DNA of 64,000 bases from Laetmonice hystrix (GCA_965235115.1 OZ249437.1:30194001-30258000); one strand, 5' to 3'; shown: positions 7,301 to 26,100, numbered from the stretch's first letter. Numbers and translations are program-made. Notes: generated by a model from the sequence alone, not told the origin.

Positions 7301-8087
7301 CGTTAGCAGTGACTGTTTTTTGACGTGTTCACCGTTAGCAGTGACGGCGTTTGTTGACGTGTTCACCGTTAGCAGTGACGGCGTTTCTTGACGTGTTCAC
7401 CGATAGCAGTGAGGCGTTCTTTGACGTGTTCACTGTTAGCAGTGACTGTGTTCATCAATAGCAATGACCATGTTGTATGTTTTGTACTCCAGTCTGCCAC
7501 CAAGGACGACAAAACGCTACAGGATCTGGGAGGGGCCGCTACATCTGTCACCAAGGCCCTCAACGACCTGCTCCAGCATATCCGGAAGGGCACCGGCGAC
7601 AATCAGGTCAGTGACACTTCTAGTTCTAACGGCTGTTTGTCATTTCATTGCTCTTTGTTCAATGAAATTTGATATTTGTTTTCGAATGTTGAATATAAAT
7701 ATTCTTTCTTGCGATCCTACTTACCTAATGCCGGGTGCTCTTTCCTACTGATTTTTTTTATATTTAAACTATATTTTTGTCATTGGATATTTGAGTTGAC
7801 TGTTGAAACTGTCGACAGGTTTCGATTATATTACATGTGGCAGGCTGGAGACTGTCCGTAAACGGGCAAGGGTTCTGTATAGACGGTGGGCAGTCCGTCT
7901 CATCTACCGAGAACCGTTCAGAGTAATGAGCTCTAATAAGAGAGCAGTAATTGCATTAATGGTGATCCCCCTGTTAGCATCCAGTCTGCCACTGTCAGAC
8001 TCGACAAATTACGGGTGACAAATGGATAACGAGAACGATGACACGGCTCTGTGGTCCGAGCTGGTGTCTGCAGCAGCAGCAGCAACA

Positions 8088-8118
<31 letters not shown>

Positions 8119-11100
8119 GCAGGCAGCAGCAGCAGCAGCAGGCAGCAGCAGCAGCAGGCAGCAGCAGGCAGGCAGCAGCAGCAGGCAGCAGCAGCAGCAG
8201 CAGCAGCAGGCAGCAGCAGCAGCAGCAGCAGCAGCAGGCAGCAGCAGCAGCAGGCAGCAGCAGCAGCAGGCAGCAGCAGGCAGCAGCAGCTGGTAGCAGC
8301 AGCAGGCAGCAGCAGGCAGCAGCAGCAGCAGGCAGCAGGCAGCAGGCAGCAGGCAGCAGGCAGCAGGCAGCAGTAGCAGCAGTGGTAGCATTGTACACCC
8401 TGATATATAAGTAGTTAGATCAGGTGGTCATCTCCCTGGAGGTACCGCCTGAAGCCATGTCTCCGGTGTCTTCCATTGCATTCCCATCTCGCAGTAGTAA
8501 TTACGTTCACTCCGGATGGACAAATGCAAGGATATCCTCCATCTCGCATCCTGCCTGGGAGGCAATTGCTCTCAATGAATATAATGGTGACTTGCTTAAC
8601 TGTGGAGCATTGATACCTGACGATATCAACAAACCAGCTTACAGGGATGTAATTCTGGAAATGGGACCTTGGGGATGTAACCTTCCTTAGTTTTGTACTT
8701 AGACTGGAGCAACAAATTGACTCCGTCATGGAGTGTGACCGCCGCGCTGTCACATGCCGTGATGATCTAATTACGATGTAATGAGAGAGTGTTAATTAAT
8801 GAAGTGGCTGACCGTGGGAATGTTTGTGTTGTTGATGACAGGGTAACGAGGGCCATGTGGACACCATACTGACGGCCACTGATAAACTGTTTGGCAGTAT
8901 GGGAGACACGCCCGAAATGGTGAAACAGGCGCGCATTCTGGCCCAGGTAAGATATGATAACTACAGTTGGACCAAACAGCAGGGTCTGGTAGTAACGGGT
9001 CCTTAACGGTCAGAGGTCAATGTCTTTGGTGCCTAGATGTTTTACACTTTGTAAAGAAGATAGATTGGACACTGACATGCATTCAGAGATGGTAGATTCT
9101 GTATTTTGATATATAGTATCTGGATTATTGTTCTATTCTATCGACTCTGAAAGTATGTGGTTTGTGTAGTGTTTAGTGCTCCAAGTACTGAAGCATTTAG
9201 AAAGATCTATAGAGGTGTCTATTTTGTCCGCCATGTGTGTGCCCGATTTGACGTTACGTCATTACGTCGTGTCGTTGTAGGCCACGTCCCAGCTGGTGAA
9301 CGCCATCAAGTGTCAGGCCGAGATACACCCCGACTCTGAAATCCAGAAGAAACTGTTAGCTGCAGCCAAGATGTTGGCTGACGCCACGGCCAGGATGGTG
9401 GAAGCTGCCAAGGTAGTACCATTATCAATTCACCATTTGACCCTCGGTCCCCAATTATTGGTTGGACAGTCAGAAAGGAGACAAGTGTCTGTTATATTGG
9501 GCACTAAAATGCCTGCTTTATATAAGCGAATACAAGATTATTGCAAAATGGGATTCAGGTTCAATAACCGGGATAGTCCCAAGCTAATTGAACTTGGCTG
9601 TGCTTGAATTGTTAACTACCATCTTTACTTTCTTAATGAGACACCAAGAGCGAAGTGTAACTAAATATAGATTGTTGAAGAATCCAAGGCATCATCAGGG
9701 TAGAAGATTTTAGATTTCAAGTTACACATCCTTTGGATGTATCCATTGTGTTAGTCATTGGAAATATTTACACTAGCACGAGTCCTGCTGTGTATTCTGT
9801 AGCCTGGAAGCAAGGCTGCTCTAATCCCGATGAAATTCTAATTTCAAGTTTAAAATTAGGGCTGGATTAATGATGCCATGTTATATGGGTGAAAAGAAGT
9901 ACCTACCGTCGAAGGAAAGTCTGACGGCCTATCAAAACGGTTGACGTTGACAAAAGCACATGATAAGAGAAATAACACTGCTCGGGAAGTATTGCCCAAC
10001 CTATTAATTACTGAACACGTCAAAGAGGTATTCCATTTAAGTCAAAGACTGATAGCTGAAAGCACAAAGAATGACAAATTTGGAAAATGGAAAATCTGTG
10101 CTGATAGATGCAGGGATGATAGGGATTTTGTGTAATGGATGCCCAGGTCCTAACAAATCATCCGTGTATCGCTCGTCACAGCAGTCACAGTGTAGGCCGG
10201 TGTCTTTACGGTAGCCTATCTGGTTTGGCCTTTTTACGGGTTTAATAAATTGCACTGAAAATAGCAACATGTCGGTGTCAGCTGGTGGGAGTGTGGAGGG
10301 CATATTCTACGCATAGAAGGATATTCTACGGTGAGTCATTCCACCTGGGAATACTGTGTCGTAAAACCTGAATTAAATGGTAATGATAATTCGTTGATCA
10401 TCTCCAGTCTGTGATGGGTAGTAGCGGTAAGGTCGTACTTGATAGGGGCGAGGCCTCAGACAGCTGGCAGATACACTTGCTGATAATGTGATAAATATCA
10501 CGCTATGCTAGATTTGAGTCTGATTCGGTAAATTCAAGTCATATATCAGTATCTTGAAGTTTGTTTTAAACAATAAGATTTAAGTTTACTGCCTCGTAAG
10601 TTTATTATATTTGTAGAAGATGGTTAATTTATTGTCAGATTGGACTTAATATTTTCCCGGAGAGAAAGCACAGAATAAGATAGTAGAGATTTATCCAAGG
10701 GCATCATCTCAGTACTTTCTGACAGGCTAAACTGGATGAACTAAATCAGTTAAGGGCAGTGATTATTAAACTAATGAGCAATTAAAGTGTTCCTGCCCTA
10801 TATTCACAGTTATTTATGCCTGTAGCCCATTATATTTTATGAAATATGTTTATGAACACTGATATATGTGAGACCAGTGTATTGTCGCCTATTTCCTCCA
10901 CCGTCACTATTGGTCCTGTTCTCCATCCCTACAGTCTGAACACCTGTCTCTGTCCCAAGCTTTCACCCAACAACCCAATATTTTAACCAGTCACCACAAT
11001 CCACCTCCCTAGACCCTCACCACACACCTCCATGTAACATTGTCCTGACGGCCAATTAGCACAGATAATAGCACTACATGTGAAAGAATACCTTCAACAT

Positions 11101-14100
11101 GGTGTCAGTTTGGAATTCCTTGATGGGGATAGGATTATTATTATTGTGGATATCGGAATAACTCTAGGGAATTCCATGAGCAGCAAGGTTACAATAGCAC
11201 TACCAGTTATTCATTAGCCTGGGAAAGCAGCCATGAGTTGTCGTCAGGTACCCAAGGACTGGGAACGTTCCCAGTAGACATGGAACCTTTCAATGGCATA
11301 CAGCAGTTTCAATATCAGACATTTACCTTCTTATCGTACACAACGATCTGGTAATGTTCCTATGGTGATGAGTGCCCCCAGGCTGGCTGCAAGAAAATTG
11401 GCAGGTCCGTCCAAGTTCCATTAGTAGCAAATTGTTCTGCTTGACTGTTCATTATTTTTCAATTGATTGTGTTTTCATATGTATTATATCTTGATTTTCT
11501 CTCTCATTGATATGTGTTTCTATCATATTGACCGTTGTGGATTTCCTCGGGGTTCATTTGTGTGGTTATATTTATGTCTTTTTTTGCCAACAGGGATCGG
11601 GACACAAGAACACACTGTGCAAGGCAGCGGAGGAACTGTGCGCTGCCACTGCTTCTTTAACATCTGACATTCTCAAGGTCATAAAACACACCAAGCAGCT
11701 TGTAGCACATCTCTCAGATCGTCATGCTAAACTTAGAAAGTGTTACTGCTCTCTGTTACCTCCAAAAACCCATACACGAAAACCAAAACATCCCAGCTGC
11801 ATAATTATCTCAATTTTCAGTTGTCTTAATTGTTCTCTTCAATTAGCTTTTTGTGCGGTTAAATGACATAAATATGCGTAGATTGTGGCTTTTTATGCGT
11901 ATTTATTGCTAGCGTTTTCAGACCTAATATGCGTATCGAGAGGATAAATAGGTTTGTCAATTACATCTCGCAGATTAAATTAAAGAACTTGCAACTTTGT
12001 GAATTGGTAAGAAATTTTCAGATGTCATTGCTATTTCAAGACAAATGACAATAATAAGGAAATGTCTGATAGAGCGAATGTAGGTCATTGTAATATATTT
12101 TTTGATGATGCTATCAATACAAGAATCAAATTAAGTTCTTCGCCGAGTCGTTGCCCTTTTGAAATAGTCGCCGTGCATATATAGACCAAAGCAAGAGGTA
12201 CTGTCGTGACATTTGAAGGTTTTAATGCAGGATGAAATGAAATGAATAACTTCGCTTAGTCAGTAACTTGTAGATTTCATCTACTCTGTCATGTGTCCGT
12301 TTTACAAAATTCCATTCTTCTTGTTAGCGTGTTTTGCTAATAATGCATGCCGTCATTTGTTCGTTATAGAGAAAGTTTGGGCTGCTTCATTGCTTCATAT
12401 TTTGGTTCGAACAGTTTGTTATGAAAGTTCAAGGATGAGTTCCTCATGTTGGTAATTTCCCATAGCGAGGAGTACATAAATTACCAACACTGGGGATCTT
12501 ACTGTATTAATTATCAGTTATTGCCCAGTTCCCTGCAGAGAAACGTTAACTAGTGTTATGTTGTTGTTGCTGATTAATGTGTATGGAATTTAAAACAATA
12601 GTTTTAATGTCGATGCCCTCAAATATAGCGGTATGTAATAACAGGGCACCGACATTCATTATGCAGCCCCTTTTTCTTTATTTGCCCTCTCAATCAACAT
12701 TAAAACTCAATATTACACTGCAAAAAGATTTGATTACTCTGGAGGACATGCCACCAAAATCTTTTTAAAGGTAGCATGAGGTCTGTGTGTGTGTGGTCAA
12801 CTGTTTTGGTGTGTTGCACTTTTGGTAAAATGGCTGAAATTGTTGACGCTTCCTTGCATTCCAGATTCATCTTTCCCTTGTGTGAACCTTGGTGTGTGCT
12901 TAGTTTTCGTGCATGGCATCCGTCTTTCAAGGCGGACAACATTGAAATAATATGTGAATGAATTAAAGCAGTTTTCTACCCCTTCACTAACCGATCTTGT
13001 TCCCATTGCCTGTTGTTGTTTGTGGTTTGAGTAGAGCTCTCACTTGTACCTCACCCACTCGACCATCCGTTTTACTGGCTATGATTTCTTACAGGACAGG
13101 AAGGTTGAAAAGAGGAGATCGCGCCATGTACGCCATAAGATGAAGAAGGCCGTGGAGGACCTTTGTAACGCCACCAATACATTGACAACTGAAATACTCG
13201 AGGTTCATCTCGCTAAGACTTTCCTTCTTATGCTTTTTTCGATTTCCTCATCAGCTTGCCTATGTCTTTGATGATTTAAATGCTGACGGATGTTTTGACG
13301 TTGTTGACGTGATTGACGTAACGGTGTGTCGTTTCCAGGGTTACCAGAGTGACACTGAAACCATTCACAAGAGATCTTTAAGGAAGGCAGCGGAGAATGT
13401 GTGCACAGTTACCACATTGTTGGCATCCGATATCATAGAGGTTAACCATATTATAACTATTCTTGTTCTTACCAAATGATATTTATCAAAGATATTTACA
13501 AATATAAGTCTTTAGTAAGATGGGCTTTATCTTTATTTTAAGTTCTAGGGCTGGTTGGTGTGTATTTCTTGGTCGAAAACGCAAACAAGGGTTGGTTAGT
13601 GACATCTTGTAAAAGATCCAAGGATGAGGAGATAGATGAGTAGAAAGTGTCTAAGATGATGGAAGGCTTGCCTGGCGTAATGAGTTCTGCTCTGCCATAC
13701 GCTGTAGAATTGCCTCTCTATTACACGGTGTATATTTACTGTCAGCGGGCAGTGGGCACAAGGCGTAGATATCAGGCGTAGGGTGAGAGGCTTAGATACT
13801 CGCATGGTGTAACCATGATTGGTTGACGGCCAGCCATGTTGCAGGGCTACCAAAGCGACACGACCGAATCAAGCGGTACCCTGACCTTGAAGCGGGCAGC
13901 CGAAGATCTCTGCTCAGCAACCAACACCCTCGCAAATGACATCCTTGAGGTGCAATTTCTGTGAAATTTGTTCCGTCCTCCTTTTCGTCCACGAGTATTT
14001 CAATCGATTTCAACTGATAAGAGTGCAATTTGCAAGCCTTATCAGATGTTCAGGCACACATGTAATTCCACAAGCCATCCAAGGATGATTTGTCACCGGC

Positions 14101-17100
14101 GAGCTGTCATGCGAACGTTGATGTTTTGTTTCAGGGTTACACCAGTGATAGCCAAGGTTACACGAGCGAGTGCCAGCCCGCCAAGCCTCGCACCTTACAG
14201 AGGGCTGTTAAGGAGCTGTGGGTTTCATCACATGATCTCACCAAGGACATTGCTGAGGTTTTCTGCGCTTCTCTTTATTTTATACTTCTTATCGCTGTTT
14301 CCTTCAGCCAATTTTCTCCAGATCTGTGATTCCAGAACAGTCAGTTTGAGCGCTGTAAGAGAGTAAAACATCAAGATTTGCCTAATTTATTTGATTGATG
14401 GTATTGAAATGATTGCGAGCCATGTGCTTACGCTGTTGACATTTGACAAGACGCCTATTTGCATGCAGTCCACGTGGCTACATTTTGCAATAACCAACCC
14501 CCTGATGTCTGATTTGCTCATTTCTTATCTTGCCTGCTTGCGAAAATGCAAACTCGGCATCAGTTAATTCAATAAATTAATCTAGATGATACTATTTCAG
14601 ACGTACACCATTGAAGTGAAGCAAACAGAGAGAAAAAGAAAGCTTCGTGATGCTGTGAAAGAGGTTGCCGTGGCAACCAGTACCCTGACTTCAGATATAT
14701 TGGAGGTGTATAATTATTTCATTATCTCCCCCCCCCCATATTTCCCGATCTTAGAATGGCGAGCCCTGCGTGTTGAATAGCCTTGTATTTAGCCAGCCGT
14801 TATAATTGTGGGAATTGTTTGCAGGGTTACACCAGTGAGTCTGGTGTAAGTGACTCGGAGGTGGATGAAAAGAGATCACTTCGTAAGGCTGCGGAAAGAC
14901 TGGGTACCGTGACAAGCACTCTGAAGATTAATCTCGAGGTTAAACAACTTTAAACCCCCTTGTCGCCCTCAAACACAATTCAGTTCATTGTATTCAACAC
15001 TGCATCCTTTAAAACCCAGTAGTGATAAAGGCCAAGGTTGAAAAACCGAAAATAAGTTGGCAAGGACGACCATTCAGTTAACTCATTATTTATGAAAGTT
15101 TATGTACTGCCTTCCTGAACGCAAACAAAATTAGCCACAGCTGCAGTTAGCATTTATTATTACAATGTTAGAGATACTTGGAAATGTAGACTCAGCACGG
15201 TGACAAAAGTATTTTATATCCACCCACATATTTCCGTGATGGACGTTTGTATTTAGCTCCGGGCCTGGGCAGCTGTGGTTCCTGTTAAACTTCATGGCCA
15301 ACATCTGAGACACGATTTGTAACGTATTAAATTCTTCCAGCCGGTTCACATTCTAACCCGACCTACAGCAGTACATTAGCTATTATATAGCCATTTTTCC
15401 AGGGCGACACGCTTTTTGTACAGAAGCGTAGGTTGAGAAATTGAACGAGACTGATATTATTTCAGGACTATCGAGACAAGCGTAAGTCTTGGAGTCGCAG
15501 GGAGAAACTGCAGAGAGCGGCCAAGGACCTGGCCTCTGCCACCAATACTCTGGCATCGGACATTTTAGAGGTTCATGCCTTTGTGGTATCATGTCGAACT
15601 TTTGAAATTTTGATTTTGAAAGTAGTCACCAGGTTCCACCCCACCCCCTCCCAATTAAATCAGAAAACCGACTCAGTCATTTTGAGTTGTAACTTAACTT
15701 CCAGGGGTATTCAACTGATGGTTATACAACGGACGGCAACACAACCGAGGGGTACACTACGGAAGGGTACACTACGGAAGGATACACTACCGATGGGTAC
15801 ACTACTGATGAATGCTTTACAGAGACAGAGGAAGTGACGTTCCGAGAGAAGCGTTACGAGGTGCGGCAACGTGCCGAGGAGAGGAAGAAGTACCGCACCT
15901 CTCTGAAGATCTTTGCCGAGGACCTCTGCCTCGCTACTTCAGACCTTACCAACACAATGCTCGAGGTCGCCACTTCATCTTCACCTTGTACTTTTATCGA
16001 TTTCACTGACATTTTGTGTGCTGGTTGAGATAATACTGATCTATTTTTGGTGTAAGTTGTGATTGTGAGTTTAACGGCCGTCCTTGCAGGGATATGAGAG
16101 TGAGAGGGAACAGTCGTCCACCAGGAAGAACTTGGAGGAAGCAGCCCAGCGGGTTGTTACAGCAACCAGTATCCTGACACTGGACCTTCTGGATGATGGC
16201 ACTGTCAGGCCAAAGGTTGCTTAATGACACTGCTTCATACTCTCATTAACTTCTCTCCATTGGCTCGGTCTTTCAGTTGAGATGGTTTGATTGGTGAAAT
16301 TATTGGTGAGCTTTGCTTCCTTTGAGAGTCCCGCTCATGAATGGTGTTTAATACAGGGCAGGAAAAAGACGGCTGTCGAGGAGGACGACACGGCTCTGAC
16401 GGGTCAGAGAAGGTCAAGGCTGGAGCAGGCTGTCGAACAGGTTGTTACAGCAACCAGTACCCTCTCCAGGGACATCCTTCACAAGGTTATATTATAGGTC
16501 ATTTATTGTGTGTTACACTGATACATATACATGTATACACATACTTTATATATGTATCGGTACCATGTATTGTCCCCCTAATTACTTGGTATATTTGCCT
16601 CGAAGCAGGGGAATAACATTCTAAGATTTCAGGACTTTATTTTATGGAAGGAACTGAGACAATGAAGAAATAAATAAAACAGGCCTACTTCCGATATGCA
16701 GCCCGAATATTCGATCTTCACAGTCATTATGTTATCTTTGGCAATATGCACTCTTCTACACGAGCACCGCTGTTTGTAGTTTTGGGCACATGCATCTTGG
16801 ACAAATTTGTCACCACAATTTGATTCATTTCCATTTTTTGGTGAAGTCTTTAGGATATTTCGTATGGAGTTTTGACTAAGATTTAGTGGAGGTTTTCTGT
16901 AAATTTGTCACAATCTGACCTTAGGAAGGCCCAGCCCCCCCCCCCCCTACCTATCCTATGTTCTATTCATTTTATCCCCTCACTTCCCCTCACCCCTACC
17001 ACCTAATCTCACCCTATCCCACCCAGACTTTTAACCCCTCTTGTGTTTGGTTTCCTGTTTGTCATTCCTGATTGGTTGACATCAACCACCTGTTCCAGAA

Positions 17101-20100
17101 CCACATGTCCAGTTCTTGTTGTCAGTCTGGACGTAACGTGACCGTTTGCTCCGACTGTCACTTGTTTTAACTAAACTTGTTTTAACGCCGTTATTGTTGT
17201 TCCGTCCACCAGGGCTGTGCCAGTAACCCACAGGATACCGACCACCAGCATGGTCTCCGACAGGCCGCTGAGGAACTGCGTTCAGCCACCAACGCCGCCG
17301 CTGCTAACGCCCTCAAGCGGAAGCTCATCAAAAAACTGGAAATGTCGGCTAAAAATGCGGCGGCGGCTGCCACTCAGCTCATCAATGCAGCCCAAGCTGC
17401 CACACCATTCAATAAAAATAACGCTTCACAGACTCAGCTCATGCAGCAGTGCAAGGTAGGCTGTGCTAATATACAAAAAAACTAAAACAAATTAAAATTC
17501 CATTGTCAGAATGGCTTCGCTCGATCATCTAACCGAGAAATCCTCACAGCAAAGGCCTACGTCAACTCCGCCCTTATAAGTTTGTTACCTCGACTATAAT
17601 AAAGGACCTTTCTCAGAAGATAAGTGATGAGGAAGTCTCACTCTATTATGGTATAAGTATACCTTCAAGTTTGCTCACGTTTGTTGAGTGGTTCTGTTCG
17701 TTCACTAACCGTTTGACGTATCCCTCATTGTTCCCGCCTTATTTGTGACAGCTCGTGGCTGACCAGAACATCCCCAAGTTAGTGCAGGGCATTAAGGGTA
17801 CCATGGCTCGCCCAGAGAACGCCACGGCCCAGCTGGTTCTGATCTGTGCCGCCCAGGACATGATCCAGCCAGGCACCCGCCTCGTCACAGGCTCCAAGGC
17901 CGCCGTGCCCACCATCAGCGACCAGCCAACCAGTTCCAGTCTTACAAACGCCGCCAAGAGCCTGGCGGCAGCTCTGGCAGAGCTGAGGACAGCTTCCACC
18001 AAGGCGCAAGAAGCGTGTCGGTCTCTGGAGATAGAGGGCGCTCTTGATCAAGTGCGATCACATGAACGGGAGCTTCTGGAGATAAAGAAAACAGCAGCGT
18101 CAGGAAAACTTGTTCCACTCCCTGGAGAAACGGTAAGTTCATTGCGGTTTTTTTTTCGTTTGTCAGAACCATGTTATTCATGTGTCGACACAAATGTTTT
18201 CAGGTACCGACCATGGCTGCTATACACAGCTGAAGTTATTTTTAGTGGGTTGGGTTATTGAAAGGACGATTGATATGATTAATGTGGCATAGCGTTATGT
18301 TATGAAGAGACTGTTGTAAACATACTTACTGAATGTCGTTATTGGTATCGACAGGCGGAATCGTCGGCTAATCAGTTAGGAACCACATCAAAGACTGTCG
18401 GCTCGTCAATGGCGCAGTTGCTGACAGCTGCAGCACAGGTACCAAGTTCCTTTCAGAATTTATCTGTTTGTGCAGAGAAAAATCAAGTCGGAATGTTAGG
18501 TTACCTAGAACTGCATGATGACAGACGAAATGTGATTTGGCATGTTTAATGACTGCCTGAAAAATAAACCGTGCTCAAAACATTGCATTAAAAGGGGGAC
18601 AAAGGATCTCTGACAAGAAATGAAAGGCACAATCACATTTCTCAACGTAGACTGATTACATCCATAGAATATAACTATGTAACTTAAGGGACTGGTGTCA
18701 GACTTCAGTTGACTACAGCGTTGATAGGAAAAGGGACTTTGTTGAAACTGGTGGTGAAGCTTGGGGTGTTTGTACAAGACTTGCCTTGTCTTCTTGTCAC
18801 GTCCTCTGCTGTCAGTGTGAGCCAGTGGCCGGCCCCTGTGACCGTATTCTGTTTGGTTTGCGTGTGTAGGGCAATGAGAACTACACGGGTATCGCGGCTC
18901 GGGACACAGCCAACGCCCTCAAAGTTCTCATGACGGCCGTTAGGGGCGTGGCAGCCACCACTGACGACCGAGCTCTGCAGGAGAAGATCTGCGACTGCGC
19001 GCTTGACGTCATGGACAAGTCGGCTAACCTGATTGAGGAGGCCAAGAAGGCCGTCAATAACCCCAATAACCCTGACAACCAAGTACGGCTAGCACAGGTG
19101 AGAGGGGGAGTTTTTATGAACCAAACCCGTGTTAGCTTTCAGGGCTGTTAACCGTCTCATGCCGGATGAGTTTAGGGCTCAAGTTGCTGTAATGAAATAC
19201 GACTAAAAGCACAGTTGAAAGCAAAGTTTTGATATAATAGAGAATTTAAACCTTAAAAAAGACGTTAGAAATACAATACTAACATTTTTTCTCGGATTTG
19301 TGTGGGTAATTCGATATTGTTTCATTGGACACAAAGTGAGCCGGATTTCACAGAATCGTGAATCTCCAGAGTAAGGAGTTTTATAAGAATTGAAATCTGA
19401 TTTCTCAAGATAGCGCTTACGATTATTTTAAAGCAGCTGCGGTTATTTCATTTGCGGTATTTTTATTTAATAATTCACTTTGTGTTTAAATACTGCAAAA
19501 CTATAGATAGTTGGAGGAGGCCAAAAAAAGATAGAATTCCACCTGATGCGGCACTGAAAACCATCACAATTGCAATGCATGCAATATTCACGGGATGTGA
19601 ATGAAATGATATTCGCATGTTAATCGGAGTTGACATGTTTCAAGGAAGCTCATATGGCTTATCCTAATGGGATTTGGACATGCAATCCATGTGATCCAAT
19701 TAGTGATAAAACTGTAAATCAAGTATTAATTATGAAATCAAGAAGCTTGGGATTTTAGGGGTTTGTGAGGAGTTCTCCATGGGACAACATAGGTATGAAT
19801 TCTCGGTTGTGATGAACCATCTAGAATGACACAGACCTAAATACCAGTATATGTAAACCCTTGGCCTTAATTCCGTCGTGTCTAAGTCAACTTAAAAAGA
19901 TGAGCTTTTCAATTCTCGATGTTCATGTAGGAAGCTTATTTCCTACACTTATTTCCTGTGTAGATTGCCCCAGATGCGAAATAAAAGAAATTCGGAATGA
20001 ATCGGGTTTGGAATACGGTAATAAGTAATCTCCTGTTCTTAAAGAGAGTGTGGGAAATGGTACTCGATAAGGGATAGCATGAGGAAGTAGAACATATTTT

Positions 20101-23100: not shown

Positions 23101-26100
23101 ATCTTTGACCAGAGCTGACGTTTTTTCATCAGTCTCAATCATTTTTCACAGCCATCAATCTGGTGTTGTATATTACTGTTCAGTTCCTCTTCAACTTGGA
23201 AACGCTGTGTTCTGGAAAACCATCGAGTGTTAGGTGATATAAGGGGTGCGTGTTGAACTTCCAAATGATGCAAGCCAAGACAACCGCTGACCTGTGAGGT
23301 CCCCAACAATTGCATCCTAGGATAAGCTCTCAACCACTGCAGACTGACCAAGTTCCCGACCACTACAGCACAGGACAAGCTGCCAACCACTACAGGACAG
23401 GACAAGCTCCCAACCACTGTAGAACAGGACAAGCTCTCAACCACTGCAGAACAGGACAAACTCCCAACCACAACAGGACAGGACAAGCTCTCAACCACTA
23501 CAGAAGAGGACAAGCTGCCAACCACTACAGGACAGGACAAGCTGCCAACCACTGCAGAACAGGACAAGCTCCCAACTACTACAGAACAGGACAATCTCCC
23601 AACCACTACAGAACAGCACAAGCTCCCAACCACTACAGAACAGGACAAGCTCCAAACCACTGCATTACAGAGCAAGCTCCCAAACTTTACTGAATCCCAG
23701 GGTAATATTCCAGTTGTGAGGCCCTAAAACTACAACACAGGATAGGCTGCTGGGCTGCCGAATGCGCTTCCACCAAAGGACATGAGATTAGACTTGCAGT
23801 CAGTCCTGCACAAGTGAATTTGATACGGAGCCGTGTCTTTTTATGAATCCGCCAATAGAAACCCAACCCAAGCCGATCGCTCACTGGGCTGACTCGTCAA
23901 CAAAGAGTGTTGAGCGCGGAGATTAAAAGGAAAATTGATACAAAACGTGTTCATCATAGGAAAGAGTAACATTGTAAAGAAGATGTGTTTGTGCAGGAGG
24001 GCATGTTGGTAAGTAGGATGAGAGGGGAGTGATGTTGGGAGGTATGAGGGAGTGTCGAGGTGAAGGAAGAAAGTCTCATGGTCAGGTGTAATGATAACGA
24101 TTGGGGAAGCGCAAGTCTGTCTAGTAGAACATTTCATCTGTTGTGATTCACAAAAATATCTCCTTGGTTGTAAAGGATTGGTCAATAAATGATTAAATGA
24201 TAACAGAGATGATGGTTTGGAATTACATGGTAGACACCTCGTCTTGACAGGTCTGTGGGAGGCTAGAACTGGCTGTTTTGTCGGGAAAATACCGGAGGAA
24301 ACCGCTGTATTATACGGCCGAAGTTATTCCGGGGTATAAAGCTGGTGTCTTTCTAAGACCGATGGCATTGTGGAGGTGGCCCGTTCTCACGCCGATCACG
24401 ACCGTAGCCAGAGACTTCTTCTGTTTTTCGGCTAAGTCGGTGCTTGATTTGTCAGTCTGATCAAGCTTGACCATTACTGGCCATCCCCTGCTGCACAATG
24501 ACCATCATCTCATCTGCTGACTTCTACCATTCATCCTCGCCTGATATTGGATCTGTGTTGGCATTTAGCTCATGATATGCCGTTGTATGTGTGCATGAGG
24601 CGGCCAGGCGGGTCGGTCGTCGGGAGTTGTCAGAAATCAGTGCAGGATCAGCGTACACCACATCAGGAGCAGTCAGTAGGGCCCCGCCGAGCGCCCTCCA
24701 GTCTGAATACAGATATGAACCGCCCGCCCGCCTCGCCCTCATCCCAGCTATTTGCTATTCGATACTACTAGCGCCCTCTGATAGCGGCCAAGTGATCTAC
24801 GAGATTCTGGGGTCATAGTGACGCCCCTCCAGGGATCGGAAAGGGAGATGAAGGATGAAACAGTGCAGCCTCTGAAGCCATTGCATCCACCTTATACGAA
24901 AAACCTTCCAAGCTATTATGTTGAATCCAATATAAAGACGTTAGGATCCGTTTTTAGGGGGAAGCTGGTTTCTTGTTCATTTTGAAATTAGGGAAAGAAT
25001 TGGAGAAAAGTAGCGATTTCTTATGTTGCAAAGAGGTTTCTGGAAAACGACTCCTATTGTATGCACTCGTTTCCCTGTCGATATGTGGAATTATTTATCT
25101 TAAATTCCCGTATTACTGTTTTGGGCGATATACTTTGGAAGGTAATGTATAAGTTTTAATTTGATGTCCCTGAGTGCCACCGTCTCAAAAGAATCACAAA
25201 CTGAATTCAGTTTCTACGATGCTACAAAACCAGTTTCCCTGAAAACCACTTCTTTCACTACAATAAAACAAGCTGTCTGTAAAGTTTATGAGAAAATTCA
25301 ACATGATGGCGTGCCTATTGCAAATTACAAGTGCTTTCATAATGTTGAAAGCTAAACCCAGCTCCCAATATTTGTTAGGCTGCCAGATAGAAAATATAGA
25401 TGCTACCATCCAGCCCTGAGCGCCGCCGCCGCCGGGATCGGTGTGTGTTTAGTTAGTGTCCTATATCAGCTGGTCGTGTCCCAGGACATGAAGCCACCGT
25501 TGGATCGGACACCGGCCCAAGTTGCACGGCCGTATATCGACGTTGTGGGGAGGGGTGTCACTGTCTGAAGCCATGGTCGAAAATCAGGCCTCCAGCATGA
25601 TTGATCAGGGATGGAGTATATTCGGATCGTGCCGTGGTAAAGGACATGGGCCATTTAGTGGGCATAAAGAATAGCGGTGGGCATGGTGCGTGATGATCAA
25701 CCGGCAGGCCGGCTCATATTGGCATCAGGCCTCCGATTGGGGACCTGCTCAAGGTCGTCTCCAAGATTACTGTCCGTCCCACAGCCGCACTCCTAGCCCA
25801 GATGCCGGGGCCAGCTGGGCCAGCTGGCCACATTTCATTACATAGAGAAATTAACAGAGCGGAGGCCATCAGGAGATGTGTATAGGGGGGTTCCCAGTAG
25901 TCTCCGGGTTAAGATCGCGTTGGGTAAAGAGAGGGGTAAGGAATCGTGGAGTATTCACTGGGGACATGAGAAGTTTGTGGCGTCAAGGTCAATGGTAGGA
26001 GAGTGGGCAGTGCGTGCCGTTTTGTGTGGGTAGCGCCCATATAGAGTATGGCAGGACACGAGGGGTTGGCCCAGGATGTGGCCCCATCCCCCCGCCTGCT

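Follow-up and report, generated by a model that had tools for sequence, protein, structure and literature searches.

An array of eleven duplicated helix exons within the R3 region of a talin gene, and its possible use in splicing

The talin locus and its additional exons

The plus strand of the window analysed here, a stretch of 64,000 nucleotides (nt) from Laetmonice hystrix (OZ249437.1:30194001-30258000), carries a talin gene. This study concerns the 7.8-kb intron at 9412-17213, which lies between the exons for helix 3 and helix 4 of R3, one of the helical bundles of the talin rod. On the same strand, this intron contains 11 open segments, each bounded by AG and GT and in phase 0 at both ends, which we named A1 to A11. 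They are 84-261 nt long, all are multiples of three, and together they amount to 1362 nt, or 454 amino acids (aa). The introns among them measure 119-1417 nt, and the outer introns 2181 nt (5′ of A1) and 727 nt (3′ of A11). An earlier inspection of the DNA without database searches, hereafter the sequence-only reading, had described 11 open phase-0/0 segments bounded by AG and GT and encoding 454 aa. We recovered all of them, and the total holds with A10 ending at 16215. For A10, three species share the donor at 16215 and not an earlier in-frame GT at 16203.

The probability that 454 codons remain open by chance is 9e-13, and for the 1207 codons over three loci it is 9e-33. A profile built from the 11 array peptides was compared with the 627-Mb genome. 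With E values up to 10 accepted, it matched these 11 places only, and the copies themselves scored between 5e-13 and 1e-8. Given the small probability of the open frames and the confinement of the profile matches to the 11 places, chance is excluded.

The three constitutive exons that encode R3 and the 11 array exons are listed in Table 1. The exon for helix 1 contains the equivalent of T809, is 97% identical to its orthologue in a second species (locus L011) and ends in the donor CAG/gtaaga. The following exon contains the equivalents of T833 and T867. It starts after the acceptor tag/GCC, encodes MVEAAK at its C-terminal end and has the donor AAG/gtagta. The helix-4 exon carries the equivalent of T901, and Pfam assigned to it positions 83-116 of Talin_VBS2 followed by positions 1-42 of Talin_R4. 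When aligned with the solved talin-1 R3, the threonine belt is complete, with threonine at all four positions.

Among the mechanical switches of talin, R3 is regarded as the first and the weakest. It is tuned by its buried threonines, four of which destabilise it in vertebrates (PMC6032930). Whereas vertebrates carry two talin genes, there is only one in invertebrates and in simple chordates (PMC6032930). We found one talin locus in this genome, and an assignment to a teleost talin-2 was dropped for this reason. The source organism is therefore non-vertebrate, and what is known of vertebrate R3 applies to it by homology only.

Table 1. Exons encoding R3 in the talin gene and the 11 exons of the array (positions in the window).
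Feature	Position	Strand	Description	Support
R3 helix 1 and first half of helix 2	8842..8946	+	Constitutive exon	talin-1 residues 802-831 (PDB 2l7a, 6r9t; E 6e-8)
Remainder of R3 helix 2, and helix 3 (VBS2 helix)	9281..9412	+	Constitutive exon	talin-1 residues 837-875 (E 2e-10)
A1	11594..11677	+	28 aa, shortest copy; GSGH linker, no GY	profile E 3.5e-9
A2	13095..13202	+	36 aa; linker strongly basic	orthologue L011 8232-8336
A3	13339..13440	+	34 aa; GYQSD linker	orthologue L011 8469-8570
A4	13845..13949	+	35 aa	gapless alignment with codons 1-35 of the helix-4 exon
A5	14135..14257	+	41 aa; GYTS[DE] head doubled	orthologue L011 9234-9362; P0003 (fourth species)
A6	14601..14705	+	35 aa	orthologues L011, L012
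A7	14825..14938	+	38 aa; helix end divergent (..KINLE)	orthologues L011, L012
A8	15466..15570	+	35 aa	top profile match of the genome (E 5e-13); orthologues L011, L012
A9	15705..15965	+	87 aa; seven GY[ST]T[DE] pentapeptides, then one long helix	dN/dS 0.06-0.09
A10	16090..16215	+	42 aa, end ..DDGTVRPK	donor after ..GT[VI]R.K common to three species
A11	16357..16485	+	43 aa; evolves fastest	orthologues 50-51% identical, dN/dS 0.12-0.15
R3 helix 4 and first R4 helix	17213..17455	+	Constitutive exon	talin-1 residues 876-957 (E 1e-12)

Origin and conservation of the array exons

Each unit of the array begins with a variable head, mostly GY[ST][ST][DE] followed by charged residues, and continues with the pattern L..A[AV]..[LV]..AT..L..DILE. 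AlphaFold2 predicted residues 1-9 of A4 as coil and residues 10-34 as helix, with values of the predicted local distance difference test (pLDDT) of 85-97. Residues 1-38 of A9, which hold its repeat, were predicted to be disordered and residues 40-86 to form a single long helix. In the 28 copies known from the three species, hydrophobic residues form a seam at profile positions 16, 19/20, 23/24, 26/27, 30 and 34/35. The belt threonine, equivalent to T901, is present in 10 of the 11 copies here and in 27 of the 28, and the leucine after it in 27 of 27. These are the two most conserved residues of the array profile. A5 is the only copy of this species with another residue (serine) at the belt position, where its orthologue in L011 has threonine. 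A complex prediction with A2, A3, A5 and A4 as separate chains returned a score of 0.02 and gave no answer about packing.

Of the 11 copies, A1-A4 and A9 have a cysteine on the hydrophobic face (..EDLC.AT..), at profile position 24 (13911-13913 is one such codon). It is retained in the orthologues, and the parent helix 4 has an arginine there.

Pfam found no match in any array exon. Against solved structures, the array profile matched the fourth helix of talin R3 and did so only weakly, and a BLASTP comparison of A4 with the helix-4 exon was marginal (E 0.024). The case for descent from helix 4 was therefore built on ungapped colinearity, gene position and profile ranking. A4 and the helix-4 exon share 11 of 35 ungapped positions (L15, A18, A19, E20, L22, S24, A25, T26, N27, A30 and L34), the T901 equivalent among them. 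The array lies directly in front of the helix-4 exon, and in each of the three loci this exon was the best match to the profile outside the array. From these observations we derive that the copies are old tandem duplicates of the 5′ part of the R3 helix-4 exon. The sequence-only reading had seen in them amphipathic copies of the host helix that keep its belt threonine, and the motif, the profile and the alignments bear this out.

To judge the age of the duplications, we compared the last 22 codons of eight in-register copies. The identity among paralogues was 0.56 at the first codon position, 0.72 at the second and 0.34 at the third. In the 66-nt flanks on either side of the same copies it was 0.30-0.31, which is the random level. 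Since positions 1 and 2 are conserved and position 3 and the flanks are random, the duplications must be old, and what has been preserved of them is the peptide alone.

Orthologues came to light when the profile was run against 1.84 billion representative proteins, where it matched six short reading frames on genomic contigs of other organisms. L011, on a 1.8-Mb contig, has the full set of 11 exons, in unchanged order and flanked by the corresponding talin exons. The third species (L012/L013) has A6-A11 and the helix-4 exon, and its contig reaches no further. On a contig of a fourth species, at least two of the exons, A5 and A9, lie between those for R3 and R4. A3 is also covered by P0002, an open reading frame from a further genome. 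All orthologous exons in L011 and L012/L013 are open, and their length differences are in frame throughout. In 12 of 12 cases the best match across species was the exon at the same position. Only the exons could be aligned across species; the long introns could not. As examples, the orthologue of A1 (L011 6800-6883) is 71% identical in amino acids, and those of A7 in L011 and L012 start right after a TAG that acts as the acceptor.

Between the window and L011, over 445 codons, we estimated 0.24 nonsynonymous substitutions per site (dN) and at least 1.7 synonymous substitutions per site (dS), a saturated value, so that dN/dS is about 0.15 or less. The array exons of the other two species pairs gave 0.09-0.15, and A1 by itself gave 0.13. 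The corresponding range for the helix-4 exon was 0.02-0.04. The sequence-only reading had named stops or frameshifts in orthologues, together with a dN/dS near 1, as the marks of pseudo-exons; we found open frames and the low ratios just given.

Variation within the species points in the same direction. Three genomic DNA runs of one sample showed 33 variable sites and nine indels over 11500-17460. All five single-nucleotide polymorphisms inside array exons (two in A4, one in A5 and one in A10 among them) are synonymous (P = 1.3e-3), as are both of those in the helix-4 exon. All nine indels are intronic.

The segments might nevertheless be the decaying remains of a duplication that was never used. 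Such an origin would be consistent with their weak donors (see below), with sequencing-run matches that were genomic only and with the lack of an annotated protein containing the array in our searches. It is hard to reconcile with 454 codons that stay open here and 1207 over three loci, with a dN/dS of about 0.15 or less beside saturated synonymous sites and introns, with the intact AG, GT and donor -1 G of all 28 exons and with exonic polymorphism that is synonymous only. We consider it hardly credible. Four independent lines in the DNA (paralogues, orthologues, splice signals and polymorphism) show that the 11 segments are real, old exons, under selection at the level of the peptide and at the splice sites.

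A more distant relative (L014) has a plain intron of 119 nt between helix 3 and helix 4, with a strong donor and no array. Its identity in two talin exons is 68-72%, compared with 83-93% among the array-bearing species. The absence of the array from L014 means that it is specific to one clade, and it is confined to one lineage of a non-vertebrate, probably spiralian, animal group. In another, more distant relative (L015 361-642), R3 helix 4 has an exon to itself, 43 codons long, in phase 0 at both ends and with ..RLE/gtaagc at its 3′ boundary. An additional intron of about 150 nt follows before the first R4 helix, and this intron has no counterpart in the window, L011, L013 or L014. The array exons could have descended from a stand-alone helix-4 exon of this kind; the alignment does not settle the matter.

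Some tandem repeats were also recorded. The head of A9 is a 15-nt tandem repeat of 6.3 copies, and the count of its pentapeptides varies among species and is always in frame: seven here (15717-15810), eight in L011 (10403-10530) and 11 in L012 (859-1040). Two repeats lie in other talin introns. At 8070-8382, directly 5′ of the R3 helix-1 exon, lies a (GCA)n microsatellite with about 97 units, which reads as a long poly-Q, poly-A or poly-S in each plus-strand frame. A 27-nt minisatellite at 23319-23683 (13.6 copies, 84% matches, no indels) is open on the plus strand and could encode a candidate nonapeptide repeat (..PTTTEQDKL..).

Splice signals and the use of the exons

AG and GT are present at the boundaries of all 28 array exons of the three species. 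The last codon is AAG or GAG in each of them. Internal glutamate and lysine codons end in G in 63% of cases and in A in 37% (P = 3e-6). What is constrained at donor position -1 is thus the nucleotide and not the amino acid. Beyond this, the array donors are RAG/GT and no more, mostly with a pyrimidine at +3. All 11 lack a G at +5, which at least nine of the 12 constitutive donors in this gene have (P = 3e-4). Scored by their match to the consensus, the array donors reached 5.2 and the constitutive ones 6.9 (P = 7e-4). In the two further species the orthologous donors are equally weak, and in L011 several array acceptors are AAG.

The codons for GY-[ST]-S-[DE], which open several array exons, spell AGTGA or GTGAG (in A7, CCA/GTGAGT). 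As a result, a consensus-like 5′ splice site stands 10 nt into the exon at 14825-14845, 13339-13357, 14135-14155 and 16090-16108. These sites are probably a by-product of serine and aspartate or glutamate codons; they could also act as alternative donors.

One could suppose that the array belongs to a separate transcript, for example a short talin isoform that starts from a promoter within the 2.2 kb of intron 5′ of A1. The vertebrate talin-2 gene has internal promoters and short isoforms (PMC2702505), and the largest intron, of 2181 nt, lies directly upstream of A1. However, the acceptor of A1 is conserved, A1 has no in-frame start of its own led by ATG, and the talin exons on either side join the array in phase. 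A separate transcript is therefore highly improbable.

As the exons are in phase 0 at both ends and their lengths are multiples of three, any subset of them keeps the reading frame. We hold, with moderate confidence, that they are regulated cassette exons, because the donors have been kept weak and all exons are symmetric. The helix-4 exon is a different case. It also encodes positions 1-42 of R4, so it cannot be skipped and the copies can only be added ahead of helix 4. The swap of the last R3 helix by splicing that the sequence-only reading had envisaged is thereby ruled out. Any such swap would have to occur in the folding of the protein and not in splicing.

The same fact bears on a mutually exclusive choice of the Dscam type, in which each transcript would take one A exon and R3 would become a five-helix bundle in 11 variants. 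Tandem homologous exons that are each individually conserved would be expected in such a system. But the parent exon is irreplaceable, on account of R4 positions 1-42. Moreover, the introns are all at least 119 nt, so that no steric block hinders the joining of neighbours, double inclusion causes no frameshift since the lengths are multiples of three, and the exons are unequal (84-261 nt). In a search for docking and selector sequences, we found no family of inverted repeats that pairs one site with every exon, although diverged pairings could have escaped it. We regard mutually exclusive choice as very unlikely.

A constitutive insert needs more attention. All 11 exons would always be included, and R3 would be enlarged to 15 helices, for example as three five-helix bundles. 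Each exon has a distinct sequence at a fixed position across species (12 of 12), as would be expected of helices with fixed neighbours. The constraint is similar over all exons, and no regulatory motif or system of RNA pairing was found at the locus. However, the array donors are far weaker than the constitutive ones of the gene in all three species, several acceptors in L011 are AAG, the skipping of symmetric exons is free of cost, and the relative L014 does without the array. We ranked regulated above constitutive inclusion because donors that are conserved and yet weak are typical of regulated cassettes; constitutive inclusion is rather unlikely in our view.

Several observations weigh against regulated inclusion. 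Searches of sequencing runs with the whole array and with the segment from A8 to helix 4, the latter chosen so that runs containing the helix-4 exon alone would also match, matched three genomic DNA runs only. Among 5.8 billion proteins and 1.84 billion representatives, we obtained genomic read-through frames and no spliced talin, either with or without the array. We saw no enrichment of Rbfox-type motifs (GCATG) and no conserved intronic element or block at the loci compared. The weak donors are suggestive of alternative use and not proof of it, and the one-to-one conservation of each exon would also fit a constitutive folded insert.

The following course of events can be proposed. In one lineage, the 5′ part of the helix-4 exon was duplicated in tandem long ago, and this gave rise to the 11 exons. 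Each exon encodes a loop of about nine residues, often GY[ST][ST][DE] and acidic or phosphorylatable, and an amphipathic helix of about 25 residues in which helix 4's hydrophobic seam and buried threonine are retained. As regulated cassettes, the exons would be spliced in frame between helix 3 and helix 4 of R3, either as a block or in subsets. Isoforms could then have up to 454 additional residues and 11 threonine-bearing helices at the weakest switch of the rod. These helices might assemble, among themselves and together with helices 1-3, into additional bundles of low stability (3 + 11 + 1 = 15 helices), or they might compete with helix 4 for the core of R3. It is unlikely that they stay exposed. 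Either outcome would give the protein additional length for release at low force; this mechanical consequence of the insert is one that we infer only.

A more specific proposal is that the spliced number of spare fourth helices makes R3 a multi-state force buffer with hidden length. A threonine-bearing spare helix would re-cap the three-helix core as helix 4 is pulled off, or the 15 helices would form three weak bundles that open in turn. The maximum extension at low force would be about 150 nm, and the GY[ST][ST][DE] linkers would provide control by phosphorylation. This proposal is speculative, and we think it is more probably wrong than right by a wide measure.

Meaning and comparison with known systems

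The talin rod has long been viewed as a fixed set of 13 bundles. If the array can add up to 11 threonine-bearing helices to R3, it would be a natural experiment in the re-engineering of a mechanosensor. It would supply ready variants for single-molecule unfolding, for studies of vinculin and RIAM binding and for the relation between rod length and adhesion architecture. It would also show exon duplication building the units of a helical bundle helix by helix.

A likeness of the array helices to vinculin-binding sites had been pointed out in the sequence-only reading, and it holds at the level of the sequence pattern. The vinculin-binding consensus is LxxAAxxVAxxVxxLIxxA (quoted in PMC6001692 and PMC2242828). 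The array profile is hydrophobic at consensus positions 1, 4, 5, 8, 9 and 15, and six of the nine positions fit. At position 12 it has threonine, as in the VBS2 helix of talin itself. It differs at position 16, with threonine or alanine, and at position 19, with isoleucine. To our knowledge, R3 helix 4 is not among the mapped vinculin-binding helices.

Our search of the literature on talin splicing returned exon 17b of TLN1, the promoters and isoforms of talin-2 (PMC2702505) and C-terminal variants in Ciona (PMC1702346), with nothing in R3 and no array of this kind. Exon 17b is a previously unannotated in-frame rod cassette of 51 nt between exons 17 and 18, and it is reported to alter the mechanosensitivity of talin-1 (Gallego-Paez et al. 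2023, PMC9997659). It is the single known rod cassette and was itself a surprise (PMC9997659). Like the array exons, it keeps the reading frame and lies inside the talin rod. Unlike the array, it is one exon of a vertebrate talin-1, affects R1-R2 and is not a duplicate of a neighbouring helix. The array comprises 11 duplicated helix exons (1362 nt) in R3, in the sole talin gene of an invertebrate.

Clusters of the Dscam type and the human clusters of substitution splicing (PMC9741552, PMC8373072) share with the array the tandem duplication of exons, old copies that are individually conserved and homologous segments. Their copies replace each other, whereas those of the talin array are additive and of unequal length. 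No docking and selector pairing was found for the array, and neither steric hindrance nor the frame opposes the joining of its exons.

In muscle, the spring and ruler proteins titin (PEVK and Ig) and nebulin also have extended series of duplicated, symmetric exons, whose variable inclusion sets length and compliance. The talin array resembles them as a long run of symmetric duplicated exons in a force-bearing protein. The fold and the protein are different, and the unit here is one helix of a four-helix bundle in an adhesion mechanosensor, whose variable inclusion we suppose from its sequence features. The array is best filed as a tandem-duplicated array of symmetric exons, placed in this case at the key mechanosensitive bundle of talin.

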